DNA of 64,000 nt from Cyanophora paradoxa CCMP329 (taxonomy: Eukaryota > Plantae > Glaucophyta): the NCBI GenBank assembly GCA_004431415.1, contig QPMI01000093.1, positions 62,001 through 126,000 of the forward strand, in the 5' to 3' direction. Below, one piece after another: positions 49-64,000 of this stretch. The translations under genes were made by a program, and so were the position numbers. Positions within the stretch are counted from its first letter, which is position 1. The number at the start of each line of letters is the position of its first letter. A model generated the notes under the pieces. That model saw only the letters and a list, made by a program, of their open reading frames with translations, was not told the DNA's origin and did no database searches.

Positions 49-2901
49 ATGATCCATATTAATGGCTGGACAACGCCTCGGTTTCCCATCCGGTGCGGAG
101 TCCGGCAGGGTGGTCCTCTATCGCCATATCTATATAATTTGTGTGCGCATCTATTAATCATGTTAATCGATACTGAACCCCGTATACGCGGGGTGCAAAT
201 TTCTGGGCGGTCCATATGCAAGGTCCTCCAGTTTGCTGATGATACTGTTCCCCTTATTGCCTCCTTTGCGGAATTCCCCATTTGGGACGCTCTCATTAAG
301 AAATTTCAACGGTTAACAGGGGCGAAAATTAATCTCGAAAAATCGCATATACTACCCATGCACTCAAATTTATCTCTTCCACCTGATTGTCCTTTTGAGC
401 GTATGAAGGTTGATCCTTCTGAGATTTCCGCAGATGCCAAGATCGCCAAATATCTCGGGTTCCCTCTGGAGCTAGTGCATGACCGGTTTTGGAATAAAAA
501 GACTGCTGCTCTCGTTCTGCGCGCACAGTCAGTTAACCGGAATCGGATGCCTCTACGCTCTGGTGTTTTACTTGCGTGGGCTGCTATTGTGGGATCACTA
601 CATTATCCGCTGTATATTTTAGAACCGGGAGGTGATCGTTATAAAGCTTGGAGTAATTTAATCCGCAACTTTTCGGGTGTACGCGGCTCCGTATCTACAT
701 ATGTTACGGCGCTTCCGTTTAAAGACGGTGGATTAAATTGCCCAGATATTGTTACGTTTTCGCTGGCTTTAAAATCTAAATGGCTTGCCTTCCTTAACGA
801 CCCGGCCTGTTCAGCTCCTTGGAAGGAATATATTCAATACCAAATAGACCGTCAGTTGGCTCCATTCTCTTATGCTAATGTCATTTTGGGGCTTGATGTG
901 TCTGCCATCTTGCCAAGATTGCATTTGCCACCGCTTTGGCAGATGCTGTTTGAGGCGTGGCGAGATCGTCAAGCCGTTGCATCTCCTACAACCGTGCATC
1001 AAATTTTGACCCAGCCTATTTTTCTTAATCCTTTATATGTTCTTCCTAGTGACATTGCAGCACAGACACATACTGAGTTTGCGAGAGCCGGTGTACAGCG
1101 CGTCGCTGACATTTGGGATGTACAGTTGCACCGATTTCGTGCTCCCCCTGCAATGCTAGTTGATTATACTGCTGCCTTTGATCAAATTTGTCGTGCCCTG
1201 CCATCCAGTTGGCTTACAACGCTTACTGCTAATGCCGTACTGGAACGTTTCTTATGGTATAAATCGAAAGATGATAAATATGTGTATCTGAGGGGTCCCT
1301 CGGGCTTTTTTGTGGCCTTCCCTCTTTTTGAAGGTGAGATTGTCCCACGGGTGTTGGATTTCGTCCCGTGGCCCCGTGGCCGCCCTCCAGATCCGCTCTT
1401 GTACCCTGGCGTACCAGCTGGCCTCTTGCCGCTTCATGTGCTCTCCTCCCAGTATTTTATTTCTTTGCGCAGAGGTTCGCGTCCAATTCTGGTTTCGCTT
1501 GGCACGGGTTCGACAGCTACGCTTTCCTACAGCAATTTTGCTTTCACATTCGATAAGATGCTCACGCTTCAGGGCTTTTCTGTTCGGCGCTTTTACCAGC
1601 TCGAGGTACAGCGACTGTGGCGGGTGCGGAGTAGGGCTAAGATGCCTTCAGAACACTGGGGTCTGGATCTCCCTCTTAATCGCGTGTCTCAGCTCGTCGC
1701 CCTTCGTGCCTTTCCTATGCTGTGGCTCGATGTCCTCTTCCGTCTCCGATATAAGGCTTTCCCATCTTTACAACGGCCGCCGGTCGCGGCTATTTTCTGC
1801 CGCGCTTGTAATGATGGGCAGCATCGTTCAGTGCGGCACGTTTTCTTTGATTGCCCTGTGGTGCAGGGTTTTTGGCGGGCCATGCATGCTGAGCTCACAT
1901 CCTTAGCAGAGGCTTTGCCCGAGGACGTGCAGCCCTCTTTACCATTGCCTCCTATTACGTTCTCCGCTATTCTAGATCCACAAGTTCCCGGTGTTGCGGG
2001 GACATTGATCACATCTTCTGTGGATGCCGATTTCTGTGTTCGGTATCTCGGTTATATTTTGGCGGGCATTTACGCAATTTTTCAGCTGTCCCGTGCATAT
2101 CTCTCACCCGATAATTTACTTGCTGAGCGGGTACCAGTGTACTCCGTTAATGCTCTGCTAAACCTGTGGAAACGTTTTCTGGATATTCTCGAGATTACGT
2201 TGCCTCCTGCTGTCGAGCGCATTGAGCTTCTTCGTTTACGGCATTTAGGGGAGGGCTCTGATTACGATGGTTCAAACCCTGAGTCACGTGACCGCCCTAG
2301 CCCCCTCAATCTATTTTTGATGCGAGCTTCTTTTCTGTGCGCGGAGCTATCCCTCTACAGCGCTCGGGCCCCCAGCAGTCGCGGTCCCGGGCCCCCTGCA
2401 GTCGCTACCCCTAGGCCTGCTGCTACAGTTAATGGCGTCGGCGTGAATCCTCAAGTTCAGCACATTGCGAGGCCATCTGCTAGCGCTGATACAGCTTCGG
2501 TCCCGGCTCCCTCGAGTTCTCGTTTGAGCTCGTCTGCCGATGCTAGCGCTAGCGCCGCTTCTGCCTCCACATTAATATGCCCTATTTGTGGGAAGAACTT
2601 TCAGTCTTCTGCTGATCGTGACCGTCATGTTCGGGCTGATAAACATCCTGCTAACGCCCGTGGCGTTCGCCGACCTCGAACCCCCTCTAGTTCAGAGAAT
2701 CCTCCAGATCCTGTGCCTCCTGCCCAGCGCCCCCGCCTCCAGTCTCCGGATCCGGCACCCCCAGTGCTTGCTCCAGCTCCTGCAGCTGCGGCTACATATG
2801 CCGAGCCCCGTCAGCCTGTTCCGACTTTGCGACGGATTCGCTCCCTGCACCCTCACCGTCGCCACCTGCTCAGCGGCTCCGTACTTCCCTGCCCCCCCTA
2901 G
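49..2901 (+). CDS. LINE ORF2 reverse transcriptase (N-terminally truncated by window edge) with CCHC zinc knuckle and an extra C-terminal C2H2 zinc finger
   Basis: 950-aa open frame. RT motifs as above, CRACNDGQHRSVRHVFFDC, and LICPICGKNFQSSADRDRHVRADKH. Confidence 0.92.
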   Translation: MIHINGWTTPRFPIRCGVRQGGPLSPYLYNLCAHLLIMLIDTEPRIRGVQISGRSICKVLQFADDTVPLIASFAEFPIWDALIKKFQRLTGAKINLEKSHILPMHSNLSLPPDCPFERMKVDPSEISADAKIAKYLGFPLELVHDRFWNKKTAALVLRAQSVNRNRMPLRSGVLLAWAAIVGSLHYPLYILEPGGDRYKAWSNLIRNFSGVRGSVSTYVTALPFKDGGLNCPDIVTFSLALKSKWLAFLNDPACSAPWKEYIQYQIDRQLAPFSYANVILGLDVSAILPRLHLPPLWQMLFEAWRDRQAVASPTTVHQILTQPIFLNPLYVLPSDIAAQTHTEFARAGVQRVADIWDVQLHRFRAPPAMLVDYTAAFDQICRALPSSWLTTLTANAVLERFLWYKSKDDKYVYLRGPSGFFVAFPLFEGEIVPRVLDFVPWPRGRPPDPLLYPGVPAGLLPLHVLSSQYFISLRRGSRPILVSLGTGSTATLSYSNFAFTFDKMLTLQGFSVRRFYQLEVQRLWRVRSRAKMPSEHWGLDLPLNRVSQLVALRAFPMLWLDVLFRLRYKAFPSLQRPPVAAIFCRACNDGQHRSVRHVFFDCPVVQGFWRAMHAELTSLAEALPEDVQPSLPLPPITFSAILDPQVPGVAGTLITSSVDADFCVRYLGYILAGIYAIFQLSRAYLSPDNLLAERVPVYSVNALLNLWKRFLDILEITLPPAVERIELLRLRHLGEGSDYDGSNPESRDRPSPLNLFLMRASFLCAELSLYSARAPSSRGPGPPAVATPRPAATVNGVGVNPQVQHIARPSASADTASVPAPSSSRLSSSADASASAASASTLICPICGKNFQSSADRDRHVRADKHPANARGVRRPRTPSSSENPPDPVPPAQRPRLQSPDPAPPVLAPAPAAAATYAEPRQPVPTLRRIRSLHPHRRHLLSGSVLPCPP

Positions 2902-4122: not shown

Positions 4123-7100
4123 TTTTTTTTTTTTGAGAGACTACGGTGGGGCGAACCCCCCGTAGGTAGTGATATTAAAGACAACAAAGCAATCACAAAT
4201 CAAAGATACAGTAAACTAGCACAAAATATATACAGAATCAAGAGGGATCACGAGAAGGGACACGATCAGAAGAACGCAAAAGATAAGGAGAACGAGCACG
4301 AGGAGAAGGAGTAGAAGAGCTCAAGGGCGTCGATGCAGAAGTACTAGTCACACTAGAACGACGAGGAGCACGGGGACGCAGCAAATAAGGAGAACGAGCA
4401 CGAGGAACTACAGTCGAAGACGAAGATCTAGACGAAGACGACAAGACAGAGCTAACAGCAGAACTAGAAGACGTAGTCGCAGGAGGCAAAGGCGGTAGAA
4501 CAGTAGGAGAGGCGAAACGTAGGACACCACTAGAGGGGAAAGTCGAAGCTGGCGGAGTGTCTAAACGGAATCGAGATTGTAGAGTTGGTAAAACAATGGA
4601 CGGCTGAAGACTAATCTGAGGAACTGGGGACGACACGAGGAAAGGGCAGAGCTCGGTGCAGACTCGGAATCGGCAGTATAAGAGGAGGGGCGAAACGCAA
4701 GCCAGTAGTGACAGGGAAGGCAGACGATGGGCTGAACCAGGCGGGAGAGGCAAATATAGCGAAGTAGAAGAGAGAGAAGGGTACACACGAGGAACGTCAC
4801 CATACACAAAATACTCGCTGCCAAAAACTATACGGTCTGACGGTCGCTGAAGATAAAGAGGCGGAACTGCCTGAGGGCTAACAGTGAGAGATGGAGGAGG
4901 AAGAGGCAGAGCTAACGACAAAGGGAACGGAATCAAAGGTACAGGGAAGGCATGGAATACACGAGGAACTGGAAGGTGGAGGGGCCAGTGCTCCTAACTA
5001 ACATCGATGAAGCATCTGATGGAGGTGACGGCAAAACAACTGAGGGTAAACTAAGTTGAGGTGAAGCGAAGATTGATACAAGACTATCATGAATCAAAGG
5101 GGGCCATGCAGGAACCGGCGGGCGAGGTGGATCTGGCGGGACAGCCAGAGGGAAGCCGAAGGTACAGGAGAGGAAAGCCGCAGGCGCCGAGACACATGGA
5201 CAGGGGACGGATCGGCATCGGGAGGCAAGGTTGAATTCGACGGAGACCGGGGGCGGCGGATTCGTGAAACGGAAGGTATCAGAGAAGGACTAGGGGGGGC
5301 AGGGAAGTACGGAGCCGCTGAGCAGGTGGCGACGGTGAGGGTGCAGGGGAGCGAATCCGTCGCAAAGTCGGAACAGGCTGACGGGCTCGGCATATGTAGC
5401 CGCAGCTGCAGGAGCTGGAGCAAGCACTGGGGGTGCCGGATCCGGAGACTGGAGCGGGGGCGCTGGGCAGGAGGCACAGGATCTGGAGGATTCTCTGAAC
5501 TAGAGGGGGTTCGAGGTCGGCGAACGCCACGGGCGTTAGCAGGATGTTTATCAGCCCGAACATGACGGTCACGATCAGCAGAAGACTGAAAGTTCTTCCC
5601 ACAAATAGGGCATATTAATGTGGAGGCAGAAGCGGCGCTAGCGCTAGCATCGGCAGACGAGCTCAAACGAGAACTCGAGGGAGCCGGGACCGAAGCTGTA
5701 TCAGCGCTAGCAGATGGCCTCGCAATGTGCTGAACTTGAGGATTCACGCCGACGCCATTAACTGTAGCAGCAGGCCTAGGGTAGCGACTGCAGGGGGCCC
5801 GGGACCGCGACTGCTGGGGGCCCGAGCGCTGTAGAGGGATAGCTCCGCGCACAGAAAAGAAGCTCGCATCAAAAATAGATTGAGGGGGCTAGGGCGGTCA
5901 CGTGACTCAGGGTTTGAACCATCGTAATCAGAGCCCTCCCCTAAATGCCGTAAACGAAGAAGCTCAATGCGCTCGACAGCAGGAGGCAACGTAATCTCGA
6001 GAATATCCAGAAAACGTTTCCACAGGTTTAGCAGAGCATTAACGGAGTACACTGGTACCCGCTCAGCAAGTAAATTATCGGGTGAGAGATATGCACGGGA
6101 CAGCTGAAAAATTGCGTAAATGCCCGCCAAAATATAACCGAGATACCGAACACAGAAATCGGCATCCACAGAAGATGTGATCAATGTCCCCGCAACACCG
6201 GAACTTGTGGATCTAGAATAGCGGAGAACGTAATAGGAGGCAATGGTAAAGAGGGCTGCACGTCCTCGGGCAAAGCCTCTGCTAAGGATGTGAGCTCAGC
6301 ATGCATGGCCCGCCAAAAACCCTGCACCACAGGGCAATCAAAGAAAACGTGCCGCACTGAACGATGCTGCCCATCATTACAAGCGCGGCAGAAAATAGCC
6401 GCGACCGGCGGCCGTTGTAAAGATGGGAAAGCCTTATATCGGAGACGGAAGAGGACATCGAGCCACAGCATAGGAAAGGCACGAAGGGCGACGAGCTGAG
6501 ACACGCGATTAAGAGGGAGATCCAGACCCCAGTGTTCTGAAGGCATCTTAGCCCTACTCCGCACCCGCCACAGTCGCTGTACCTCGAGCTGGTAAAAGCG
6601 CCGAACAGAAAAGCCCTGAAGCGTGAGCATCTTATCGAATGTGAAAGCAAAATTGCTGTAGGAAAGCGTAGCTGTCGAACCCGTGCCAAGCGAAACCAGA
6701 ATTGGACGCGAACCTCTGCGCAAAGAAATAAAATACTGGGAGGAGAGCACATGAAGCGGCAAGAGGCCAGCTGGTACGCCAGGGTACAAGAGCGGATCTG
6801 GAGGGCGGCCACGGGCCACGGACGAAATCCAACACCCGTGGGACAATCTCACCTTCAAAAAGAGGGAAGGCCACAAAAAAGCCCGAGGGACCCCTCAGAT
6901 ACACATATTTATCATCTTTCGATTTATACCATAAGAAACGTTCCGGTACGGCATTAGCAGTAAGCGTTGTAAGCCAACTGGATGGCAGGGCACGACAAAT
7001 TTGATCAAAGGCAGCAGTATAATCAACTAGCATTGCAGGGGAGCACGAAATCGGTGCAACTGTACATCCCAAATGTCAGCGACGCGCTGTACACCGGCTC

Positions 7101-9370
7101 TCGCAAACTCAGTATGTGTCTGTGCTGCAATGTCACTAGGAAGAACATATAAAGGATTAAGAAAAATAGGCTGGGTCAAAATTTGATGCACGGTTGTAGG
7201 AGATGCAACGGCTTGACGATCTCGCCACGCCTCAAACAGCATCTGCCAAAGCGGTGGCAAATGCAATCTTGGCAAGATGGCAGACACATCAAGCCCCAAA
7301 ATGACATTAGCATAAGAGAATGGAGCCAACTGACGGTCTATTTGGTATTGAATATATTCCTTCCAAGGAGCTGAACAGGCCGGGTCGTTAAGGAAGGCAA
7401 GCCATTTAGATTTTAAAGCCAGCGAAAACGTAACAATATCTGGGCAATTTAATCCACCGTCTTTAAACGGAAGCGCCGTAACATATGTAGATACGGAGCC
7501 GCGTACACCCGAAAAGTTGCGGATTAAATTACTCCAAGCTTTATAACGATCACCTCCCGGTTCTAAAATATACAGCGGATAATGTAGTGATCCCACAATA
7601 GCAGCCCACGCAAGTAAAACACCAGAGCGTAGAGGCATCCGATTCCGGTTAACTGACTGTGCGCGCAGAACGAGAGCAGCAGTCTTTTTATTCCAAAACC
7701 GGTCATGCACTAGCTCCAGAGGGAACCCGAGATATTTGGCGATCTTGGCATCTGCGGAAATCTCAGAAGGATCAACCTTCATACGCTCAAAAGGACAATC
7801 AGGTGGAAGAGATAAATTTGAGTGCATGGGTAGTATATGCGATTTTTCGAGATTAATTTTCGCCCCTGTTAACCGTTGAAATTTCTTAATGAGAGCGTCC
7901 CAAATGGGGAATTCCGCAAAGGAGGCAATAAGGGGAACAGTATCATCAGCAAACTGGAGGACCTTGCATATGGACCGCCCAGAAATTTGCACCCCGCGTA
8001 TACGGGGTTCAGTATCGATTAACATGATTAATAGATGCGCACACAAATTATATAGATATGGCGATAGAGGACCACCCTGCCGGACTCCGCACCGGATGGG
8101 AAACCGAGGCGTTGTCCAGCCATTAATATGGATCATCCCCGACAGATCAGAATACAAAAGACGGACCCAGTCAGTAAAGTATGACCCAAATCCATATTGA
8201 TTCAAGGTCCAGAAAAGAAACTCCCAATTCACCCGATCATAGGCTTTGGAGAAATCAAGGAACCCCAAACAAAGTTCCTCGAGATCGGGATTATCCCCCT
8301 CATAATACATCAATAAATATACGAGCATAAATTGATGCACCGCAGAACGTTTGGTGATAAAACCCGACTGATATTTTGATATTAAGCGGGGCATGATAGG
8401 GGTCAAGCGGTTAGATAATGCCCGCTCGACTGCTCGCTCCTCTACATTCGATAGAGCGATAGGCCGACGGTTAGTGACCAAAGTCGCATCCGTACCAGGT
8501 TTCGGAATTGGGACAATGAGGATATCTCGTAGCGAGCCAGGGCCGCCTTCCGATTATGCATAGCCTTAAGGTATTCCATAAAATCTGGACCAATGTCGCC
8601 CCAGAAAGTACTATAAAATTCAGGTACTAAACCATCAAGTCCAGGGGATTTTCTAAGCCCAGATATATCCTTAAACGATTGCAACAATTCATAGGCGGCC
8701 AGTGGGGTATCGAGATCCACGGCCTCCCGCGGAATGAGTTTATAAGGCGCATACAGTGACGCACATTCAGCCCGTTCATCACGATGCGCCGCCACCACAC
8801 TTTGAGCTTGCTGACCATCGTATAAATCAGCGAAATGAGCTGCCGACAACGTCATAAGCACAAAGGATTATCAGAAGCATAAGAGGGATCCGGGGTGTTG
8901 GCCGGCCGGAGTTTATTCTCACATCCGGTCTCCTGCTCAGCAGTTCCGAAATAATGAGTGAAAAACTCCCGCCTCGATGTGGCCTCGTTCTGACTTGAGA
9001 ATAGCGAGTCAGCTTGAACGGCAGCCCTACACACTTGAGGCATGCGCTCCCGCAGCTCTCTATAAAGAGCAGAGCGGCCACTCAAGAAACTGTCCCGTAA
9101 GATCTCGCCCTGCGAATAGGCGGTGATGAGACGTTCGAGACGTTTCATGGCAGACCAGTAAGCCGACTTATTCTTGCGCCGCTCAGTCGACTCCCACGCA
9201 GAGAGAGCAGTCTGTAGATACCGTTTAAGAGCTTCGAAGCGAAGAATAGAATCGGATGCAGGCGAAGGCCACTCAGCACGCCACATCTGAAAAACCTTCC
9301 GAATTTCAGCGAGATACGCTGGGTTCTTCCCATAAAGGTCCCATCGCATCTTCTGTGCATGTTTGCTTCT
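4123..9370 (-). mobile_element. L1/Tx1-like LINE, copy 2 (inverted, 5'-truncated, frameshifted)
   Basis: T12 at 4123-4134. 4123-8185 is the reverse complement of 1-4069. It extends further 5' with RPIALSN, QSGF, FLDFSKAYDRV, KSPGLDGL and the post-endonuclease region. Several 1-bp indels split ORF2 (ORFs at 7027-8481, 8442-8861, 8852-9349). Confidence 0.93.
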
Positions 9371-46476: not shown

Positions 46477-46833
46477 GCAGCGTTTCTAGGCAGGTATAGG
46501 CTCTTTCTCCAGTATAATAGCTCCACCCGGTCCGATGTCTGAAAGGCTTAGTCCCGTAGCCTAGTAGGTTCATCTCTCGACTTGACACAGATGGACACAT
46601 CAGTTTTATCCTTAGCCATTTGTCTCGGTGTGTGCGAATTCAGACGTATATGTCCCTCCACGAAGGCATTTCTCCGTCTTCAAACTCTTAAGAGTCAAGA
46701 TGATTCCCGCCCCCTCTCCCCCCCCTCCCCCCCCTCCTCCCCCCCCCCCCCACACTCGCGGCCGACCCATCCGAACCCCGAATAACGATGCTCTCAAATT
46801 TCGAAACAGCGCATGCATTGCTTGCACTTACAG

Positions 46834-49800
46834 CTATTTTTTACGGTAATAACCGCTGTTGTAAGGGTCATAGGGGTCGGAGGAGCTGCCAGAATTGGAG
46901 CTTCCACTGCTTGTGCTTTCCGAATTGTAACTGTCTGAGTAAGGGTCATTTGAGCCGCCGTTGTAAGGGTCATAGGGGTTGTAGGAGCTGCCAGAATCGG
47001 AGCTTCCATCGCTCGTGCTTCCAGAACTGGAACTGTCAGAGTAAGGGTTATCTGAGCTGGAGCTGCCGGAGCTCGAGCTCGAGCTCGAGCTGCCGGAGCT
47101 CGAGCTCGAGCTGCTGGAGCTTGAGCTGGAGCTGCCGGAGCTTGGTCTATAGCTTCCAATGATAGAATTTGCTAAGCCAGAGCTTGCGCTTGAACGGAAG
47201 TTCTTCCAGTAGTTCGGGTCCATTTGCTGCAAGTAAGTCTGAAGGTCCTGATCGGTTTTGGGTTGAGCGACTTTGAGTAAGGATCTCTGTGCGCACAAGA
47301 TGCATGTGTAAGCTAACAATTGCTTAACTATAAGCAGATTAGATGGAGATCGCACTGGGGTACATGTGAATTCGCACTTCCTGCAGGTTGTTATACCATC
47401 TTTTAACTTATTCGCAATAGTATTCCTCAGAGTCTGAGCTGCTTCCGTTTCAGCCTGGCAAGTCTGCGGCAGAGCAGGCGATCGCGATCGATATCAGTAG
47501 CGAGCTGAAGCAAGTTACAGATTGAAGAACACGCCATCACACCTTGTATGCTGGAAGGAGCAAGAAACGGATATACTCTTTGTAAATTTCGAGATCAACT
47601 TGTCTTTGCCGGACAAACGCGCTCAGCGTGTTTCGATCATTTGCCAATCGGAGCGTCGAGTTGTGCACGGATTTGATTGTATCTTCCGCAACCTTAACGA
47701 CCTTGTCGGCCCACCGTTTCTCGGCTTCTGCTTGCCGGGAAAAAACGGCAGCAATGGCCGCCATCGCAATCATAACTGCACATGTATTCGAGGGTTATCA
47801 TTATGACCCTGCTGCTTTGTTTTATATTTTCGAATATTTGCGCACCTGCTGCGATCAGGATGTAGATAATCGCCCGCTTTCGCTTCTTGTAAACATCATG
47901 TCGGGTGCTCTCCCGTACAAGAACCTAAATTCGGCAATCAGCGATGCAAGCTGAGCCCGAAACTGAGGTCTACTCACGACATGCTCTGGTGTGGGCTTCA
48001 AAAACACCGATTCGTCGAATTTCTTCTTCCCCTTATCCTCGCCATCCTAGCCGCACGCACTCAGATCAACACGGAACACAAATGCCTCCGCCGTAAAATT
48101 ATAACATAATGGTTGCACCTTAAAAAGCTTAGGCTTGGACCTCTTGAAACGATCCCAGGCCTGGTTGCAGCGAGTCCGCAGCGCCTCCGGAACAAGTCCG
48201 TACATCGCCCCCGATGGTTCTCCCATTCCGTACCGCTGAAGCCACTGCCCAAGTTTAAACGAATTCTGAAGTCAGTAGCATGAAGATACGGTACAAATGC
48301 GAGAACGAACCTCGTTGGCCTCCGTCAATGCAAAGCCACCGAGAAGGAAGGCCTCGGCTTTGGTGCGCAAAGTTTTCTTGATCTTTGATATGTGGACGCT
48401 GTCAGGGTCGGTCCAGCGGTCCGACGGAGGGATACCCAGGGCTGACGACGACGAGGAGCACATCATAAACAAATGCAGTCAAATGCTATAGCTAATGCTT
48501 GCGTTCACGCACCAAGTTTGTACTTGTCCGCCCGAAGAGACAGCTGAGCGTGCAGTCTGCAAGTACAGTCTGCTCTCTTCGTGCTCTCTAGGACCAACTA
48601 AAACGATAGCTCACCGTGAGATATCTGCATCGAACTGCATGCAGGTGCACGTGCATTAGACTTGATCTTGAATGATGACGCAGCTAATTCAAACGCAGGC
48701 ATACCCTGATGGCCTCCTCCATCTCTTTCACAGACTCGCAGAACGCCGGATCATCAGCAAGCACCGCAAGGTCGGCCGGCGTCTTGCCGAGGAGCGCAGT
48801 GAATTGCACTTTCTGCCTTCAGGCACGATTTAGAGGTTGCGGTGCAAAACTCGACCGGGGGCTCGACCTACCACGTGTTCACCGCCTGCCAGACGTCGAT
48901 ACGTTATAATTAGAGCGGTTCGGCGCAGAAATTACTATGCTACGTATAGACGTGAAATTAGGCAAACGCAGACTCACATCGATGCACAGCTGCTGCCGGC
49001 TGTACATTTACGGTTTCAAAGTAACGGCGAGTAAGCGGCAGCGTAAACGTGAGAAACACAAGATACAGCAACCAAAAAGAGCATGCACACCGGAGGAAGC
49101 TCCGCTCAGATTCGGATGCATTCGGACCAAGCGTCTCCGGCAGCGGAGAGATTGCTTCCATCTCAACCACGCTGATGCGCATTCGAGTTTGTGAGCAAGG
49201 AATGACTTCGCGCAAGTACACTTGATATACTAATTCTGGAAACTTATTCTGAATTTGAGGAAAAGAAAATTCTGAAGGACGGACACAACACGCTTGCTCT
49301 TTGCCTGGGCGTATTCGAATTCTGCAGAGAAGGGCAAAGTAAGATCGGGCGCGGGTTGGCGTCTGTGTATATAGGCTAGGTGCTCACCGTCAATGCTGCA
49401 CACGGTCAGAAAACAAATGCAAGTCAATTCGCGCGGACGGACATAAAATCAGCAACTCTGAGAAAATGACACACACCAATGCTGGGATTGCAGCCAATCG
49501 TTGGTGAGGAGGACGAGGACAACCGAGGATCCTTGGATGGCGATTGCTCTTGCTTGGCTCCTGTGCAATCGCAAGTTCGATTTCAAGAAGAGCCGAAAGA
49601 CGTGCGCGACAAGATATATAAAGGGCGCCATATGCATAATATATATGTGTACGAACCACTGCAATCCCTTCAGAATTCCTTTTGATTGGAAGTCCCAGGA
49701 TTGCGAAAAATTAGAAGCAATTCGGCTTCACACAAAAAAGCATGGCACACCGCTATCAGCGTTTGAGTCGAACCAGTGCGATATAGCTCGATCCTTCAAT

Positions 49801-51638
49801 AACTCGCAGATGATCTGCCGTGCGCATTTATTGGTCAAGCCGCGATTAATCATAATATTCGAATCTGGAAATAAGAAGTTGCTTCAATTCGTGCACACCT
49901 GCATTTCTGCTGTCTGCTTTCGGCGATACCTGTATATCGCAGAGGAGCGGTATTGATATTAGACTTGCGATAAGCTGGCGCTCATGTGCAGGCTTAAGGA
50001 TGCTCACGAGACCATGACGTCGTACGGCTTGATCGGGACGTTTGCATCTGCGAAGCAGGTTCGTTTAGCGACAATATATATATCGCCTCTGAAGATATCG
50101 ATCGCAATATCAATGCTGATCATGATGCTGAAATTCAAAGCGCGCAACCCGCGCTGTAATAAGTGTACATTGCAATCACCTGGCTCAACCACTGACGCTC
50201 CCTGGGGCTGCGGTTGAAATCAGCATCAGATCCGTCGTGATGTCCGCTGTATATAATATATATATTGAGTGCAAGTAGAGCATTGAAGGCTGACCCGAAT
50301 CCCAGAGACGAGGCGATCCCAAACTTCGAGGTTGCTTGAGTTGTCTACTCGTTTCCTACATGACCACCATGCTGATTTTTCCGTGAAGGTTGGTTTCTGC
50401 AACTCCTTCACGTTGATCTCCACGTGCTTCGATAGAATGGTAGCAGCAGCCATTGCCTCAACCGTCCCAGCGGCTTTTGCTGCCTTGCTAACACTCGTCC
50501 CGATTGAAAGAGCGACGATCTTGCGCCCGAGCCAGACGGCGTGGTCAAGCTCAACGAGGCAAGCGCTGTTTCCGCCTGTAATCAGCCAGGTGGAATTTAG
50601 AATGCGAGGCGCGAGCGACACGCACGGAGAACGGAACCATCCTTTTTGAGACGGAGGTCAATTTCGTTCAAATCACGTGCACTGGTCAGTACAGGCAGGC
50701 AGGAGGCGCGGCCGGCTATTCGGGTGCAAACCTTTCGTGGCGATAACGACGAAACTTTCACAGCTTTCTATTGCAGCCGAGATCCGCTTCTGGTGTTGCA
50801 AATTCTCGATAACTCCTTTGTGCTCAGCCTTGTCTTCGTCATACCAAACCTAAAACTCGCATTATCAATTTGGCAATGTAAACGCTATATTAAAGCGCAC
50901 TTTAAGGCCGAAACGTTGGAGGCCTTGAGCGAGGGTCGCGGCGGATGGCGCGTCGGTGTAGCGGTAACGTCGGCCGAAACAACCGAAGTGCCCACTAGTA
51001 GAGGCTCGGGCGTAGCTGATAGCACTGCCAGCCAAAAGAAGGATCAAATGGCGTCCAGGAATTCGAAGGATGCAAGAGGAATCAAAACAAAAAAAAGCGC
51101 GCAAGCTGAAAGATGCAAGCTTTAGAGATTAAGAGAAGCATGCGGGACGCACGCGTCATAGAATAGAATCTGTTCTTCGGGGCGCGGATCGGGAAGCGGG
51201 GCAGAGCTGTAATCCCGTCCTTTTGGAGCTGCCGTCGATATGAGCCCCGGCCTCGGGTGGCTAGACAGCGCCTTCCCGTCCGCTGAAGCGGATTGATCGT
51301 TGATCGTCATGACAACGATGCCACTATCCCCGACCACTGCCTGCGGTTCGCCAGCCTCTGGATCTTGGTAATCCTGTGCGCGCGAATACTTCATGATCAG
51401 TGAGCGTAGGATCGCCACTGGAAAAACCGACATAGCGATATCGAGAGCAACTTTATCGAATCATTTGAATGCCCACGAAATGCGCCCGCGAGCGCACTGG
51501 CAGCTGGCCATCGATGTCGCCGCTGGTGCCATCACCCGCCGTCGGCTGCGCAGAGTGCTTCGTCGAGCGGAGCCAGCTAGGCAATGTAGGCACGCGCAGG
51601 CTGGGCAATGTAGGCAATGTAGGCTTGAACTTCTTCAT
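46834..51638 (-). CDS. Tandem TIR-TIR domain, single-pass transmembrane protein (TIR-A), ~898 aa, 27 exons
   Basis: In-frame GT-AG exons: 51638-51498, 51373-51153, 51024-50901, 50849-50732, 50641-50626, 50565-50295, 50207-50180, 50047-50008, 49929-49899, 49814-49751, 49678-49657, 49560-49477, 49395-49388, 49321-49285, 49171-49091, 48999-48978, 48885-48872, 48816-48705, 48634-48615, 48556-48513, 48441-48311, 48244-48119, 48046-47978, 47924-47846, 47775-47543, 47463-47356, 47286-46834. TIR1 is FYDAAISYAR..LAQGLQRFGLKVWYD..ISAAIESCESFVVIATKGWFRSPACLVELDHAVWLGRKIV. TIR2 is YDVMVSYRR..LLKDRAISHWFD..ILKGLQWSQARAIAIQGSSVVLVLLTNDWLQSQHCIDEFEYAQAKSKRVVVV. The TM helix is AIIYILIAAVMIAMAAIAAVF. Confidence 0.88.
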
Positions 51639-52639
51639 AGCTATAGCCGGTTGCAATCGCAGCGAACTTCGCGCCCCCGCGCGAAAGTGCCGACTGTCGC
51701 GTCTACCGGGCAATGCCTCAAGGCGACGTCCGACGTCCAACTCGAGCTCGGCGATGTGCGCACTAAGTATCCGTATACTTAATTATGCGTACGCATATGC
51801 ATACGCCTTGCTATAGCCGCGGCCGCTGTCTCGGCGCTGAGCAGTCTCGACGAGCTCGAGTCGAGTGGACCTGCCACTGGGCTGCCAGTCGACCGGGTCC
51901 GGGACGGGTCCTACCGAGTAGTACCGACTCTACTACCGAGTCCTACGGGCTCCTACCGACTCCTACCGAGTCCTACGGGCCCTAGTACCGTAGTACGGGG
52001 TAGTACGGGCCCGGGGATCCCGGAGTCCCGGACTCGGGACCGGGGACTCGGCGGGCCCGGGGGAGTCCCGGAGTCCGGGGAGTTCAGGTTTCAACGGTCA
52101 CCGGATTTGCTCGACTTCGCTGGCAGTGACTGACACTGACTCATCAGTGAGTACTACCGGTAGGCTGTAGCACCGTGGCACCGTGGCGGCTAGCCGCCTG
52201 GCGCCGACTAGCCTACGGTACCGGGTCACCGGCCGCGGGTAGGCCTGCGGAGGGTGCGGCTTGCCGTCAAGCTTAACTTAGTAAGCCGGGCTGGGGCCGC
52301 AACGACTCGCAACTTGAGTCGCAAGTCAGTGATCAGGGCCTGCAGGGCCAGTGCAGGCCCCAGGCCCAGGCCCCAGTGGCCTCAGGCCTCGCCGAGTCGG
52401 TCCGGCCGCTGCGCATGCAGCCAATGCCAGCCATTCAATAATTGCGCCGCGCATGCACTGCGGCAGTCCGGCGCGCCATATCATAGTACTACTATACTAT
52501 GATAGTACCGGAATAGACTCGTAAAAAAAGGAACGTCGTAAAAAGTTGGCGAATCAGCAGCTAATTTTTTGGTACTACGGTACCGCACCCGCGGCCGGCC
52601 CGGCAGTGGGCCGGCACAGGCGCCGTACGGCGTACGCAT

Positions 52640-53100
52640 ATATGCGCAGTGCAGGACACTGCAGTCTGCAGACTGCAGGCTGCATCTTCAGACTGCAGGC
52701 TGGAGCCTGCAGGCTGCAGCCTGGCGCTGCGGCAGCCTGCAGGCTGCAGCTGCAGCCTGCAGACTGCAGGTGCATATGAGACGAAGCGTTTTGATAACAA
52801 CGCCTTTCATCTCGCAAGCTTAAGCTTGCGAAGCTTGCAAGCATTTTCAACAAATTCGTAACGCCTTTTATCTTGCAAGCTTGCGATTCGTTGCGAACAA
52901 CAACAACTCGGTAAGTAAAGCCCGGTGGCCTTTCAAGCTTTAAGTTTCATCTTGAAAGCTTCCGAGTTCGAATTCCGACTCGGCGAGACAAAAGCAAGCG
53001 AATCATTTTCCAAGCCTACACATCTCCTTTGGGGCCTTCAGCTTTCATCATGCAAGCTTCCGAGTTCAAGATTGGCAATTGCATTGAAATTCGATTTTGA
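52640..53100 (+). repeat. Dispersed repeat, inverted partner of 60540-60880
   Basis: Shares ctgcaggtgcatatgagacgaagcgttt.gataa, aacaacaact.ggt and aatcat.ttccaag..tacacat..c...tggggcctt with the reverse complement of 60540-60880. Confidence 0.8.
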
Positions 53101-55082: not shown

Positions 55083-58000
55083 GCTTAGCTATAGTTGTAA
55101 GTCTAGATCTAAATAGGGTAGTACTATGTCTCCTTCCGAAGTTCTGATTATTGAACTGCGAAATTCAAATTAAGCTGCCATGGTTAACTTCGAATTCGGA
55201 TTACGTATACATAACACCTGCCTGTACTCGGGGGCGGTGTGCCTGGCTTAGTGCCCGGGGCAGAGTGCTTGGGGTGCAGATACTAGTGGCCCGGCCGCGA
55301 TTCTCGCGCCGGGGGTGCAAGGGGGGAACCGGGATCTAATGAAAGAGTCGTAGTGGCACGCACATGCACGGGGCAGATCTAGATCGACCCCGGCCCAGCG
55401 CGCGCGGCAGGTTGAAGTGTAAAGATAGACACAGAGTATATATGATTGAAAAAAATAGAAAAGGCCCGGGCCCATTAAGCAGACGCTGCGATCAAACCGA
55501 ATAGAGAAAAGCCTCAATGAAAGGCCAGATTCAGCGCACTGTATATGAAAGATCGTTCTGGAGCGAAAAAACGCTGCGCATCAACTGTTCGCACGGCCTA
55601 CCGCTAACCCTGAACAGCTGGCTAAAAGATGATGGTGCTGTCTGCAGAGGGCTCGCCGTAAACATAGGCGATCCAGGCCTTCTGGAGGGGGTCGGGGCGG
55701 AAGTCGACCATGGGGGTGAGCGGCAGCCAGCGGCGCCGGTCCTGAAGAGAGCCGTCCTGCGAGAGCATGGTGAGGCGGCCCGCCGCCTCGAGCGCCCGCA
55801 GAGCCACGCGGCTGGCGCGCTGCTCTGCACGAACAGCCCCGACAGACAGCATGCGACGGCTGTCTACTCACCACCCTTCGGTGCATGCGCAGGGGCGGGC
55901 AGAGCCGCAGCCACCGGCACAGCTAGGAAGCGGCGCAAGCGGATTTGCGGTGCAAGCTCAAGCACGAGTGCCGGGCAGCGTGCTCGACTACGGGCAGCGG
56001 CGCGTGCTCGGTACGCAGTGCTGCGGTGCAAGCTTGATGCAGTGAAAAGTAGTCCAGGCGGCACGGGTACCGGGCGGCGTACGCGGCGCACTGCAGCTGC
56101 GAGGAAGCGGAAATCTATAGGAGACAGGTAGAGAGAAGTGGTTCCATGGCCATGCAGAACCGCGCAACGAAGAGCAAGGCGTACGCGACGCACTGCGAGG
56201 AAGCCGAAATCTACAGGAGACAGCTAGGGAGAACTGGTTCCATGCAGAACCACGCAAGGAATTCGAAGACCGGAATGAGAGAGAAGTTGGTTTCCAGGCG
56301 TCAAGGCGAGGAAAGCTGGTCTTCGCTCTCGAAAACCGCTTTTTGCATGGACGGCCGCAGCGACAAACACGTGGCGCAACCCAATTTCGACCCATTTTTT
56401 TCCCGCGTTGCAAACTGGACCTCGAAAACGGCCTCGTAGAAAAATTTTGGCTGAAGCGAGGGAACGGGAAGCAAGGGGGGAAGACCTTCGGTCTTCTTTC
56501 CCCCCTTGCAATATATATGTCCTCAAGCTCCTCCTCGTCGGCCGCGGGCCGACGCCGACATCGTCGTGGGCTATATTCTAGTGAATTAAGTACAAGACTT
56601 CGAGGTGCATGTGCACGTGGGGACCGGATCCGGACGGGAGGCCCGCGCGCCAGGGCCGCCGAGGTCCGGGATCCGGAGAAGGTAGGTAGCTATAGGGTAG
56701 GAAGAATTCGAACAGGAGCCAGATCCGGAGGCGCACCCTAGGCCTGCTGCTGGTTGAGCTTCTCGAGGAGCTCCTTCTCACGGTGCAGCTGCAGCTGAGT
56801 TTGATGTCAAGGGGCAGATCTAGATCTAGTGGAAGACGCCCCGCGGCCCCATGGCCAACTTTCACACACGACTCAACCCCAGGGCTGGCTGGTGGCCGTC
56901 ATGGCATGGTGGCCATGGGCCGGCGCCAGATGATCGACGCCAACGGGGGGTAAAGGGGGAAGGGGGTGGGGCGTGTGGGGGGGGGGGGGGAGGGGAGGGG
57001 GGAAGGGGATGGGCCCGGGGGCCGGGGGTCGTGGGCGTGGGCGAGGGAGGGGCGGGAGAAAGGGAGGGAAGGGGGGGGGGGGGGGGGGGGGGGGGCAGCG
57101 GAAGAAGGGCTAACTGACTAGCGCTAGCACTCGAGCTCCCTAGCTATAGCTATATAGCTATAGATGTAGGCCTGGGCCGCCAGGCTTTATAAAATTAATA
57201 GATCTCATATAGGCTAGGGCTGGGCCGCCAGATTTCGAAATCGAAATCTGCCCCGCCGGCCACGTCACTGTCCGGTCCGCTACGGGGCCGGGCGCCCGGC
57301 GAGCCACGCCACTGTCCGGTCCGCTACGCATTTGCCCCACCATGGCACCCGGAGAGCCGCGCCACTGCCCTCCGTGCCTCCGCTATCTATAGGGGCCGCC
57401 CGGCCGCCCCGTCCTGCGAGTCGGGCTAACATCTGCTGCAACTCCAATTTTTGCAACCTGCCTGGCGATCGCGAGCCGCACCGCCGCCCCCCGCGCCTCC
57501 ACGTGCACCCCGCCCGGTGATCATGATATCGATCCGTGCCACGGTGCGCCTCCACATGTACACCGCCACTGTGTCTCCACCCCATTTTGTTTTTCGCAAA
57601 AGTGGACGTCGCATTGATACACCACGGCACATGTATCAATGTTCTACGTGACGTGCCCTTCCGACCGGTCATCTATCTGTGTCTCCAGCCCACTGTGCCC
57701 CCCGTCACGGCGTTGTGCCTCCACCCCTTAATAATAGTTTGTGATCATGATCATGCATTTGAGGACTCTATAACAAAGCTTGAAGCTTGCAATTGAAGCC
57801 TCTCTCCCCCGCCCCGAGAGGCGGCTGATCTCTCTAGGCTAATGGCGGTAACCGGCCATATGCATCGAAAATAAAAGCGGCGTAATGAGAGAAAACCCCC
57901 CCCCCCCCCCCCCCCCCCCACCCCCCGCGCTCGTGTGTATCGCGCTCGCACTCAATTAGCAGATGTCATGTCTGTAGCTAGCTAATGATAAATCTGATAA

Positions 58001-60539: not shown

Positions 60540-60880
60540 CATGTAGACTCTCTGAGATGAATTTCGGAATTTCGAAACTTTAAATCATGAAAGGCCCCAA
60601 GTGAAATGTGTAAACTTGGAAGATGATTGGACTGTCTCGGAAGCTTGCAAGATGAAAGGCCGCCGGGCGTAACCAAGTTGTTGTTCTTATCGAAACGCTT
60701 CGTCTCATATGCACCTGCAGCCTTCAGGTGCCAGCCTTGCAGCCTAAGTTGCAGGCTGCACACGTGCAGCGCGGCCTGCACCGTAGGCTGCACGCAGCCT
60801 CAGGCTGCAGGCTCAGCGGCTGCCAGGCTGCAGCCTGGCAGCTGCAGCCTGCAGCCTGCACCATGCATATGGCCAGCCAT
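60540..60880 (-). repeat. Dispersed repeat, inverted partner of 52640-53100
   Basis: See partner. Confidence 0.8.
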
Positions 60881-61883
60881 AAATTATAAATCAGTTTGGT
60901 AACTTATAGTAAGTTAGTACCGGCTAAATTCAGGTAAGTTTGACGGTTGATTTCGAATTCAGGCTGCATGCATGCGCAGGCTGCATGCAGAGTCATTGCA
61001 GACTGCAGTCTGCAGCCATATGCCGCAGTGCAATATATATATACTATGATAATATGCATATACTACAGTGTGATATTATCATAGTATATACTATGCTACC
61101 GTAGTACCGTGATACTATGATATTGTTCATTGGTCCGGCGGCCAGCGCCGGCCACTGGCCCGGCGGCCAGTTGCCACTCTCGAAGCATCCGGATCCGATG
61201 AGTCGGCGATGACTCGAGCTCGGCGATGAGTTCATCTCCAAATTACCGGTAGACTCCAATGATGAGTCATTGGTGACCAGCGTAGTGGCCACTCAGTGAC
61301 TGGCCGGCCGCGCATGGTAAAGTGGCAATATGCATGCGCGGCAGTGCATCCGCGCATTGTGATTGGCCAACTCTATTATTATTTGCAAATTCAATGATTA
61401 AGCAAGCTGCAGCGGAGCTGCAGGCTGCAGCCTGCAGCCTGCGGGCCCGGGGCTGCAGCGCCTGCAGCTGCAGCCCCGGGCCCGGCGGCCCCGGCCTGCA
61501 GGCTGCAGCTTGTAAGTTGACGTTGCAAGTTACTTGCAAGTTGCAACTTGCATGCAACTTGCAACTTGGCAAGCCTTGCCAAGTTGAAGTACAACCATTG
61601 AACGGTACACTCGGTACTAGTAATATTGCAGTTTCCGACTCGTTCGAATTCCCGCCAATTTCCCGGGCCGAGTTCCGAAGTTCGTTTCAAATTTGCAATC
61701 AATGTTTTAATATTGCGGCTCGGCTGGAACAGCATGCACATCCGGGCCGTGCGGCTCTTACCGTACTAGGGCCTGCACTGGCAGGCTGCAGCTGGCAGAC
61801 AGTGGCAGTCAGTGACTGCAGCTGCCGCCGGGCACTGGCCCAGTGGGCCAGTAGTACCAGTAGTACTAGTATCCAGTCACTGA

Positions 61884-62204
61884 GGCCGAAAACCGGATAC
61901 CGGCCGATTCGGTGGTTATCCAAGTCTCTTTCCGAACTCGGGACTTGAGTGTTCGGGTCTTTACCGGGTCCTAGCATGGAATGTGGAGACTTGGAATCGA
62001 GCTCGATTCCACGAACAGTCACCAAGGCGATGAGCTCAAAATTTTGACGCGGTTACTATGGCAACCGCGTCAGGGGCCCAACGACCGAAGCGACCAAGTG
62101 CCAAAAAAATGATGTCATGGCCCTTTCGGTCGTTAACAAGTACCAGCTCTTTTGCATTGAGGGACTTGAGAAAGTACCGTCTCTAGCGTATCCGGTTTTC
62201 GGCC
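61884..62204. mobile_element. PIF/Harbinger (Tourist)-like MITE
   Basis: 17-bp perfect terminal inverted repeats ggccgaaaaccggatac / gtatccggttttcggcc, flanked by a 3-bp TGA duplication (61881-61883 and 62205-62207). No ORF. Confidence 0.8.
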
Positions 62205-62589
62205 TGAGTACCCGCTCCGCACTGCGGCAGGCTGCGCATGCAGGCTCACTGAGTCAGGAAGTGGCTGCCAGTGCATGCACATGCGTTGTACTACAGTACC
62301 TAGATCTGCCGCAGACTGGCCGCACGCGGCAGTATCGTAGTACTAGTAGTAGTCTAGTACTATTAGTACTACGTACTACGGTATATTATATAACGTCCTA
62401 CGTATACGCCGTGTGACGGGCGTACGGCAGGCTGCAGCTGCCCAGTGCCCGCGGCCGGTCCCAGAAAGCGCTGCACTACTGTGCTAGCGCTGTCTGCTTG
62501 CCTCGCCTGGGCTCAGCGGTACTAGCTATAGTCTTCTTCGGCGCCGGGGCACGACCCACGGCCCGGCGGTTTAACGTTGCCGGTCAACG

Positions 62590-64000
62590 ATGGTGAAGTT
62601 TAGGTGGCATCGCAGCAAAGAAGAACGCAAGAAGAATGCTTCGCATCCGACCGCGATCGATGAACAGCTATCGGTACCGGTGCGCTCGCGCTCGCGCATT
62701 TTCACGCGCATATGTATGCACGCCGGAGGGCATATTATAGATCTGCCGTAGATCAGGGCACGTCTCGATCGATCTCATGGCCTCTAAAAATGCTCGCTTG
62801 CGCAGGAGTTTCAGCAGCGCCCACGGGATCGGGACGCTGGCGAACCGCAGGCCACGGCCGTGGCTGGGGAGAGCGGCCTCGTTGTGGTGACAATCAACGA
62901 TCCACCCGTACACGCTACACGGGACGAAAAGGCGCTGGACCCCGAAGCCATGCAAATGCCCGTGCAAATGCACACATCTTCGGATATGGTATCAGCTTCA
63001 GCGCTCAGCGAGCTCGAGCCGAAAGCTCGCGGCAAGAGACGGGATTATTCCAGTGCACCGCTTCCCGATCCCCGCCCTGAAAAGCAAATCCAGTTCCACG
63101 ACGCGTGCGTCCACGATTTTCTTTATGTATGGTCGTCTTCGACAACATATATATCACTATATATCTTGACCTTCGGTTGGCCACAGTGCCGTCAGCTACG
63201 CCCGATCCTTCACCAGCGGGAAAGTGGCGACGCCCTCCGTTACAAATGCGCCCTTTGCCGCAACCCTCGCTCAAGGCCTTCAACGCTTCGGGTTGAGAGT
63301 GTGTATAATTTCATTTTATCAACGTCCATGCGCGCACATGGAAACTGAATCGACTTATAGACATGGTACGACAAAAAGAAGAAGGCCGATCATGGAGGAG
63401 GTATTGCGAGTGTGCAGCACCAGAAGCGGATCTCAGCAGCTATTGAGGGATGTGAATGTTTCATCGTTGTCGCGACAAAAGGTGCCCATTACCGTATCTG
63501 CATTTTATGACCTCGAAAGACGCAACATTTCACTGACCTTCGCCTCGAATAGAATGGTTCCGGTCACCGTGCGTTTCGCTTTTATCTCGCATGCTCGACT
63601 ACAACTCCCCCCCTCCCCCCTAACCCCAACTCCAATCCCTTGCTTTGTATGCTGGCCTGATCAGAAGGGGTGTTGACAGGGCTTGCCTCGTCGAGCTCGA
63701 CCACGCGGTTTGGCTCGGGCGCAAGATTGTCGCACTGTCAATTGGAACAAGTGTCCGCACGGCAGCGTCAGCCATTGGCACGGCCGAGGCGCGGGCTGCT
63801 GCTGCTATTCTGTCGAAGCACATGCAGATCAGCGTGAAGGAGTTGAGAGGAGCTGACCTTGCCCGAGTTCTGGATCGCCTAGCAGTGACGATTCGGGTCA
63901 GCCTTCAATGCTCTACTTGCACTCAATATATATATTATATACAGCGGACATCACGACGGATCTGATGCTGATTTCAACCGCAGCCCCAGGGAGCGTCAGT
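62590..64000 (+). CDS. TIR-domain protein paralogue (TIR-B), 5' part; runs off window end
   Basis: Exons 62590-62679, 62806-63104, 63187-63298, 63361-63481, 63553-63568, 63680-63896 and 63984->end have the same intron positions and phases as TIR-A. TIR1 is FHDAAVSYAR..LAQGLQRFGLRTWYD..ISAAIEGCECFIVVATKEWFRSPACLVELDHAVWLGRKIV. Confidence 0.88.

Follow-up and report, generated by a model that had tools for sequence, protein, structure and literature searches.

Does a gene of the alga Cyanophora paradoxa encode a membrane protein in which two TIR domains lie ahead of the only transmembrane helix, and what might such a protein do? The gene in question runs on the minus strand from position 51638 to position 46834 of a 64,000-nucleotide stretch of C. 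paradoxa CCMP329 (GenBank assembly GCA_004431415.1, contig QPMI01000093.1, positions 62,001 to 126,000 of the forward strand), hereafter the window, whose first letter is position 1. Our analysis indicates that it is a real, intron-rich nuclear gene of this glaucophyte, and that it is apparently unannotated. For the predicted product, the analysis supports an order of parts comprising a tandem TIR-TIR, a long linker, one transmembrane helix and a C-terminal part. We favor, with reasonable but far from complete confidence, the interpretation that the product is a membrane-tethered tandem-TIR enzyme of a small, under-annotated glaucophyte family that would be switched on by clustering or by release.

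The TIR domain is an alarm module common to bacterial, plant and animal immunity, and little has been learned of its membrane wiring outside the animals. Together with red algae and green plants, glaucophytes make up the three lineages with primary plastids.

Results

Gene model and splicing

We rebuilt the gene from its reading frames together with a scripted check of all coordinates. The resulting model spans 51638 to 46834 of the minus strand in 27 exons, starts at the ATG at 51638 (the first ATG of its open frame), stops at the TAG at 46836-46834, and contains 2718 nucleotides (nt) of coding sequence, equal to 905 codons plus TAG, with 0 internal stops. All 26 introns begin with GT and end with AG, measure 45-132 nt, and are consistent in phase throughout. 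Eight of the exons are only 8-31 nt long (16, 28, 31, 22, 8, 22, 14 and 20 nt). A preliminary description, made from the letters of the sequence alone, had claimed that 27 small exons join in frame; we arrived independently at the same count and at a 905-codon frame free of stops.

Because micro-exons of this size are allowed, a stop-free chain is by itself little proof. The weight of the gene model is instead carried by the splice consensus, by the independently spliced protein P0001 of the same organism (described below), by the exon borders of a head-to-head paralogue within the window, and by the spacing of the exons. GTG donors were found at 19 of the 26 introns and CAG acceptors at 20 of the 26, compared to regional backgrounds of 0.32 and 0.36, respectively (P ~3e-5 each). 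The largest gap between coding pieces is 132 nt, too little to accommodate an intergenic region. The exons, all on the minus strand, are as follows.

Exon 1, 51498..51638, minus strand, 141 nt: starts MKKFKP; no hydrophobic core; the paralogue starts MVKFRW at 62590
Exon 2, 51153..51373, minus strand, 221 nt: acidic and Pro-rich N-terminal region, whose end (ILFYD-A) opens TIR1 strand A; 3' end conserved in the paralogue
Exon 3, 50901..51024, minus strand, 124 nt: TIR1 strand A and helix A (AISYAR ... LAQGLQRFGLK); 65% identity to the paralogue exon; no match alone
Exon 4, 50732..50849, minus strand, 118 nt: TIR1 strand B, BB loop, helix B and strand C (VWYDEDK ... FVVIATK); P0001 by tblastn and paralogue block
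Exon 5, 50626..50641, minus strand, 16-nt micro-exon (GWFRS): matches WFSSP of P0001; 16-nt paralogue exon at 63553-63568
Exon 6, 50295..50565, minus strand, 271 nt: TIR1 helix C (PACLVELD) and strands D-E; P0001 by phmmer (E 4.9e-6) and tblastn; paralogue block
Exon 7, 50180..50207, minus strand, 28 nt (PQGASVVEP): inter-TIR hinge; PQGTSVVEP in P0001
Exon 8, 50008..50047, minus strand, 40 nt (DANVPIKPYDVMV): TIR2 strand A; identical stretch in P0001
Exon 9, 49899..49929, minus strand, 31 nt (SYRRKQTAEMQ): identical stretch in P0001
Exon 10, 49751..49814, minus strand, 64 nt (IICELLKDRAISHWFDSNADS): TIR2 helix A and strand B; P0001 by tblastn
Exon 11, 49657..49678, minus strand, 22 nt (GILKGLQ): TIR2 BB loop; GILKGVQW in P0001
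Exon 12, 49477..49560, minus strand, 84 nt (... VVLVLLTNDWLQSQH): TIR2 helix B and strand C; P0001 by tblastn
Exon 13, 49388..49395, minus strand, 8-nt micro-exon (C-I-D): its last base opens the TIR2 Glu codon, finished by 49320-49321; CLDE in P0001
Exon 14, 49285..49321, minus strand, 37 nt (EFEYAQAKSKRV): TIR2 helix C; EFEYALAQSKRV in P0001
Exon 15, 49091..49171, minus strand, 81 nt: TIR2 strand D and start of the linker; P0001 by tblastn, 60% identity over 30 residues
Exon 16, 48978..48999, minus strand, 22 nt (RRQQLCID): RRQKMCLE in P0001
Exon 17, 48872..48885, minus strand, 14 nt (AVNT-W): AVNTW in P0001
Exon 18, 48705..48816, minus strand, 112 nt (... SVKEMEEAIR): P0001 by tblastn, 56% identity over 36 residues; final exon with homologue support
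Exon 19, 48615..48634, minus strand, 20 nt (FDADIS): placed by splice and phase logic, acceptor ambiguous; model frame best by codon score
Exon 20, 48513..48556, minus strand, 44 nt: acceptor ambiguous, with several in-phase AG sites upstream
Exon 21, 48311..48441, minus strand, 131 nt: linker; no Pfam, NCBIfam or plasmid match
Exon 22, 48119..48265, minus strand, 147 nt: linker; no bacterial-genome relative, one chance-level plasmid match (E 0.5)
Exon 23, 47978..48046, minus strand, 69 nt: Lys-rich piece of the linker
Exon 24, 47846..47924, minus strand, 79 nt: KKRKR (47874-47888), then transmembrane helix residues 1-9 (47847-47873)
Exon 25, 47543..47775, minus strand, 233 nt: remainder of the 21-residue transmembrane helix (to 47741), then a helical, possibly coiled-coil stretch of ~66 residues
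Exon 26, 47356..47463, minus strand, 108 nt: four Cys including CRKCEFTC (47362-47385)
Exon 27, 46834..47286, minus strand, 453 nt including TAG: Ser-rich low-complexity tail from ~47151

Three points of the model admit alternatives. For both exon 19 and exon 20, the choice of acceptor is ambiguous. For exon 14, the donor GTCCGT was chosen because the resulting length equals that of P0001. Exon 6 contains a possible in-frame 69-nt GT..AG intron (50403-50335, minus strand), which could be optional or retained; splicing out 50335-50403 would shorten TIR1 by 23 residues, bringing it nearer to the length seen in the paralogue and in P0001. Beyond the coding region, the minus strand carries TGTAA at 46828-46832, 2 nt past the stop codon. 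TGTAA is the polyadenylation signal of volvocine green algae.

An apparently truncated relative from the same organism

We used phmmer to compare the stop-free piece that holds exon 6 with 1.84 billion representative proteins, and obtained a sole match (E 4.9e-6). This protein, P0001, is the C. paradoxa EukProt entry EP00741_P001897 (tig00000523_g1837.t1), which is 304 residues long and the only member of its own cluster. Neither the gene nor its neighbor in the window was returned by this search, although any protein containing exon 6 should have been picked up. This agrees with the description of the gene as hidden, provided that the proteome of the same genome sits in the collection. When aligned to the window by local tblastn, P0001 matched exons 4-18 in order (E 2e-36, with further pieces at ~1e-5), including the 8-nt and 14-nt micro-exons, with 47-67% identity exon by exon. 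The alignment covers the micro-exon sequences WFRSP, DANVPIKPYDVMV, SYRRKQTAEMQ, GILKGLQ, C-I-D, RRQQLCID and AVNT-W.

P0001 shares with the gene the tandem TIR pair, the start of the linker and the pattern T-x-x-W-x-x-S-x-x-C-x-x-E in both TIRs. It differs in lacking TIR1 strand A and helix A as well as everything past the exon-18 equivalent, and represents a third paralogue, encoded by a distinct gene. It starts (MCC...) just before the equivalent of exon 4 and ends (...TPLN) a few residues past the equivalent of exon 18. Both termini resemble read-through of introns at borders homologous to introns 3 and 18; when intron 18 of the window is itself read through, it ends ...LN-stop. Because its ends fall at homologous intron borders, P0001 probably represents only part of a longer gene belonging to this family, its predicted model having been cut at those borders.

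A relaxed search with P0001 limited further relatives to one TIR protein at E 0.2, and pattern and tblastn scans of IMG/VR, GTDB genomes and JGI metagenomes revealed no relatives. The gene, its head-to-head paralogue and P0001 constitute a small lineage-specific family of at least 3 copies.

TIR domains and their glutamates

As a whole protein, P0001 matched the Pfam family TIR_2 (PF13676) in two stretches with E 4.5e-21 and 76 bits, compared to a cut-off of 28, and it also matched TIR (PF01582) and ThsB_TIR. When the protein was split, TIR2 alone reached 58 bits and the truncated TIR1 21.5 bits. Its closest sequences in the PDB were RPP1 (5teb, E 2e-5), RPPT-TIR (7xoz, E 3e-5), the RPP1 resistosome and Cat1, while its neighbors in the ESM Atlas all belonged to TIR_2 clusters, bacterial TIR clusters among them. 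With a weak AlphaFold2 model of P0001 as query, the top Foldseek matches were plant TIR domains (SNC1, RUN1, L6, RPP1 and Roq1), with a target-normalised TM-score (TMt) of 0.50-0.57 and a probability of 1.00. Exons 2-3 provide the start of TIR1 that is missing in P0001 (ILFYD-AAISYAR ...), which by eye resembles the way TIR2 begins (KPYDVMVSYRR ...); the exon-3 pair, a very short profile, gave no match to P0001 TIR2 in hhalign.

We next considered the glutamates. The SxxCxxE motifs named in the preliminary description are both present exactly: RSPACLVE spans exons 5/6, with its Glu codon at 50552-50550, and QSQHCIDE spans exons 12/13/14, with a Glu codon split between 49388 and 49321-49320. 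TIR1 and TIR2 share the pattern T..W..S..C..E. The Glu of P0001 TIR2 (CLDE, for which the window has CIDE) aligned on the Glu of WCLDEL in the RPP1 TIR (5teb, E 2e-5), which places it at the catalytic position in helix C, as had been claimed. For TIR1, CLVE stands at the same spacing from the conserved T..W..S, and its assignment to the catalytic position is by this pattern only. Of the two TIR domains claimed earlier, TIR2 therefore appears well supported through P0001 (58 bits, Glu aligned to RPP1), and TIR1 is supported less strongly (21.5 bits). We infer that the TIR pair may cleave NAD+.

Membrane helix, topology and outer part

The predicted protein contains a single strong hydrophobic segment of 21 residues, split by intron 24. 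Its Kyte-Doolittle mean over 19 residues (KD19) is 2.86 (residues 634-652), compared to 1.38 for the next best segment. KKRKR, at 47888-47874, lies immediately N-terminal of this helix, as had been described. The 15 residues before the helix carry a net charge of +5 and the 15 after it a net charge of +1. Consistent with the reported lack of an N-terminal signal peptide, the first 47 residues have no hydrophobic core (maximal 9-residue Kyte-Doolittle mean 0.71). By the positive-inside rule, this charge bias would place the TIRs in the cytosol, in agreement with the preliminary description, and the last 252 residues outward or in a lumen; the protein is thus predicted by rule to adopt a single-pass type II (N-in) topology.

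The 252-residue outer part comprises a helical stretch of ~66 residues, four Cys, one N-x-S/T site and a Ser tail. The CxxCxxxC motif noted before corresponds to CRKCEFTC (47385-47362), and the tail is indeed Ser-rich, with 50% Ser over the last 110 residues. It includes a 102-nt tandem duplication (46853-46954 and 46955-47056), the copies of which are 86% identical. Repeated DPY and NPY motifs occur within the Ser-rich tail (46837-47151, minus strand). Searches of Pfam and NCBIfam revealed no recognizable binding fold or domain in the 252 residues.

Linker and 3' half

TIR2 and the helix are separated by a linker of ~200 residues that has no Pfam or NCBIfam match. The linker tests described here are sensitive to close relatives of 43-74-residue pieces only. 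Within this limit, no relative of exon 22 turned up among 185,579 bacterial and archaeal genomes (pattern and tblastn), an Atlas search with exon 22 found nothing, and exons 21 and 22 found nothing among plasmids save one match of exon 22 at E 0.5. The latter is a hypothetical protein in a phage-like plasmid region, and was taken as chance. A bacterial origin of the linker is thus unsupported by the genome, plasmid and Atlas searches of exons 21/22.

Downstream of exon 18, the splice and coding signals continue. In exons 19-27, GTG donors were found in 7 of 9 cases and CAG acceptors likewise in 7 of 9; the gaps measure 45-79 nt; and the frame used in the model has the best codon score in 8 of 9 exons, exon 26 being the exception. 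It is quite probable that the TIR exons and the transmembrane exons would be joined on one transcript.

Paralogue, inverted duplication and genomic setting

Head-to-head with the gene lies a paralogue, and the two share one block of perfect identity.

Paralogue exons 1-6, 62590..63896, plus strand: head-to-head with the gene, runs off the window; same exon borders, including the 16-nt exon
100%-identical block, 50191..50301 (equal to 63890-64000), no strand assigned: end of exon 6, whole intron 6 and start of exon 7

The gene and its paralogue are 66% identical at the protein level, with a synonymous divergence (dS) of 0.83 and a ratio of nonsynonymous to synonymous divergence (dN/dS) of 0.30 overall and 0.24 over TIR1. 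The ratio of 0.30 indicates that both copies have been retained as coding sequence, and the 5' half is under purifying selection. The ungapped conserved blocks fall on exons 2, 3, 4 and 6. The 100% identity that extends through an intron points either to assembly collapse or to an inverted duplication whose arms undergo gene conversion.

A large inverted duplication comprises 50191-52801 and 60683-64000, with its center at ~56.9 kb, and its arms carry the 5' halves of both TIR genes. The arms are ~80% identical over exons 2-6 and 100% identical from 50301/63890 to the window edge. A G-rich tract (56938-57118) lies at the center of the duplication; its counterpart, a C-rich tract at 46722-46772, follows shortly after the stop codon of the gene.

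GC content is ~50% over 1-10 kb of the window, 65-84% over 10-46 kb and 50-60% over 46-64 kb. A viral or recent horizontal origin of the low-GC block was considered and rejected; P0001 had no relatives in IMG/VR, GTDB or JGI metagenomes, and there was no phage match. Elsewhere in the window are LINE-like open reading frames for reverse transcriptase (RVT_1) at 49-2901 (plus strand) and 7027-8481 (minus strand), the nearest proteins to which, in a collection of 5.8 billion, are only 25-38% identical.

Discussion

Proposed function and rival explanations

The scheme that we infer, from a single transcript and its topology through to catalysis, trigger and biological role, is the following. The predicted protein of ~905 residues would cross the membrane once, with its N-terminus inside. 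A disordered head of ~110 residues would be followed by two TIRs, each with a Glu in helix αC as in NAD+-cleaving TIRs, then by the ~200-residue linker without detectable relatives, the KKRKR cluster acting as a stop-transfer signal, and the one 21-residue helix. On the far side, ~250 residues may form a stalk of helical structure and a knot of four Cys, ending in a Ser-rich tail that is probably glycosylated. Tether and linker would keep the TIR pair dilute or inactive. The trigger would be either clustering in the plane of the membrane, via the stalk, the Cys, the tail or partner proteins, or release from the tether. TIR pairs would then meet and form composite active sites, leading to cleavage of NAD+ or to an ADP-ribose (ADPR)-type signal in defense or cell death.

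Several observations weigh against a membrane-tethered TIR enzyme. No single exon matches Pfam, NCBIfam or PDB sequences, an outcome to be expected with pieces of 39-143 residues, and for this reason the TIR assignment rests on P0001, whose truncated TIR1 stays under the Pfam cut-off of 28 and whose single-sequence AlphaFold2 model is poor (predicted local distance difference test, pLDDT, 53). The aromatic residue that precedes the Cys in S-x-W-C-x-x-E is replaced by Ala in TIR1 and by His in TIR2; the Glu alone does not prove catalysis. Exons 19-27, which contain the transmembrane helix and everything after it, are without homologue support, since P0001 ends at exon 18. Most of the outer part is of low complexity and could be read in other frames; the DNA of its Ser-rich tail also has open frames on the opposite strand, a common property of repeats of this kind. 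Lastly, the GC content of the gene is atypical for the region, at 54% in its exons (62% at third positions, 46% in its introns) next to 36 kb at 65-84%.

The main rival on facts is that the 3' half of the model is wrong. The gene would then end near exons 18-20 and encode a soluble TIR-TIR product, while the exons for the transmembrane helix, the Cys and the Ser tail would belong to a separate gene or be non-coding. The end of homologue support at exon 18 counts in its favor, and the ambiguous acceptors of exons 19 and 20, the ease with which micro-exons yield a stop-free chain, the position of exon 26 outside the best codon frame and the Ser tail that is open in several frames all lend themselves to it. 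However, P0001 seems just to have been truncated at a homologous intron border, to judge from the resemblance of its terminal residues to a read-through intron; past exon 18 the gaps measure 45-79 nt, too short for an intergenic region; and in this half the donors are GTG in 7/9 cases, the acceptors CAG in 7/9, and the model frame is the best by codon score in 8/9 exons. We regard a wrong 3' half as quite unlikely.

A ligand receptor and a scaffold are rivals on function. Were the protein a true surface receptor, its C-terminal part would bind an external ligand or sense damage, and ligand-induced dimerization would activate the cytosolic TIR pair. This reading shares its order of parts and its charge bias with that of a tethered enzyme, and a helical stalk with four Cys could mediate dimerization; yet Pfam and NCBIfam searches recognized no binding fold in the 252 residues after the helix, the outer part has no homologue, and half of it is Ser tail. 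Such a receptor is unlikely, albeit the least so of the alternatives. A bolder version, which we consider rather unlikely, holds that glaucophytes possess their own class of surface immune receptor, in which the short outer part (stalk, Cys knot and glycosylated Ser tail) would sense attack, for example through cleavage by a microbial protease or cross-linking, and would activate a catalytic tandem-TIR, which in turn would produce a signal derived from NAD+; the diversifying locus would then be the head-to-head pair, with gene conversion still under way. The protein might instead lack catalysis and serve as a scaffold or adaptor on which other TIR proteins dock at the membrane, as in animal TLR signaling. 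The divergence of TIR1 (21.5 bits) and the replacement of the motif aromatic in both TIRs would suit such a role, while the Glu kept at the catalytic position in both, along with the nearest solved relatives being the enzymes RPP1, RUN1 and Cat1, argues against it; we consider a scaffold improbable.

We likewise questioned whether the gene might encode a protein of the cyanelle envelope, in which the N-terminus (MKKFKP...), with its many Ser, Thr, Pro, Lys and Arg residues, would serve as a glaucophyte transit peptide. Glaucophyte transit peptides typically have a Phe within their first 10 residues (PMC4510345, PMC2222254), and both the gene and its paralogue have Phe at position 4. By our own estimate, though, ~3/10 proteins have a Phe in their first 10 residues by chance; typical transit peptides start hydrophobic, with MAFV or MAAFV (PMC4510345), rather than basic; and acidic residues follow early in both gene and paralogue. 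We consider a cyanelle location very improbable, and continue to favor a membrane-tethered tandem-TIR enzyme.

Such a protein would extend the catalogue by a simple architecture, in which a pair of Glu-bearing TIRs on the inside is followed by one helix and a short outer tail. It would also provide a compact test case for the view that a dangerous NADase is kept in check by its membrane tether, as has been suggested for TirC of Dictyostelium. More generally, genes composed of 8-40-nt exons with atypical GC content escape annotation or are shortened by it. Because annotation misses or truncates such genes, as exemplified by the only database relative being a fragment cut at intron borders, TIR censuses drawn from predicted proteomes undercount glaucophytes.

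Comparison with known systems

The protein resembles animal Toll-like and IL-1 receptors in being, as predicted, a single-pass membrane protein with cytosolic TIR domains. These type I receptors carry a signal peptide and, at the N-terminus, an LRR or Ig ectodomain; their single TIR lies at the C-terminus and is mostly non-catalytic. In contrast, the gene described here has no signal peptide, LRR or Ig domain, and its two TIRs lie N-terminal of the helix, both with a Glu at the catalytic position. Surveys of TIR architectures list membrane-spanning TIR proteins as animal type I receptors (PMC7075850). The label 'reverse Toll' in the preliminary description overstated the kinship, as the TIRs resemble those of the plant and bacterial TIR_2 type rather than those of Toll-like receptors (TLRs). 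Its claim that LRR, Ig and NB-ARC domains are absent was borne out by Pfam scans of all stop-free pieces, which were negative. NB-ARC, LRR, TPR and WD40 gave no match at E up to 1 in these pieces, a search that proceeds exon by exon and that short domain fragments could escape.

By sequence, the plant TIR NADases (RPP1, RUN1, L6, SNC1 and Roq1) are the closest solved structures, and they are so by fold as well on the weak model. Plant TIRs are soluble, either as N-terminal modules of NB-ARC-LRR receptors or as TIR-only proteins, whereas here two TIRs share one chain that is predicted to be tied to the membrane. SARM1 has the order ARM-SAM-SAM-TIR; the present gene has two TIRs followed by a transmembrane helix, and its stop-free pieces had no Pfam match to ARM or SAM. 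Among bacterial proteins of the TIR_2 or Thoeris ThsB type, P0001 matches TIR_2 and, more weakly, ThsB_TIR and the NCBIfam model for Thoeris type III ThcB4. These weaker scores are far below the family cut-offs (for ThcB4, 31.7 bits compared to 220), and pattern and tblastn searches found no bacterial, viral or metagenomic relative. Unlike the bacterial TIR proteins, the gene has 26 spliceosomal introns.

The preliminary description did not recognize this architecture as described in algae. That much stands, as we found no account of TIR proteins from Cyanophora or other glaucophytes in the papers searched, but a membrane-tethered eukaryotic TIR NADase has now been described, namely TirC of Dictyostelium, in a 2026 preprint that built a TIR atlas from EukProt (bioRxiv 10.64898/2026.04.30.722052). 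TirC is a Glu-dependent NADase that is held at the endoplasmic reticulum by a single N-terminal helix and is toxic when freed, while TirE of the same organism has tandem TIRs and RCC1 repeats, with no transmembrane helix reported (bioRxiv 10.64898/2026.04.30.722052). Both resemble the product of the gene described here in being TIR proteins of protists that fall outside the families of animals and plants, TirC being membrane-held and TirE bearing tandem TIRs; we detected no sequence kinship of either with the gene. TirC differs in that its helix is N-terminal and lacks an outer part, and in that its TIR is of the CAP12/Pycsar clade (PF10137), a family to which P0001 gave no match. As judged from these likenesses, TirC is the nearest functional analogue of the proposed tethered enzyme, with another order of parts and a TIR of another clade.

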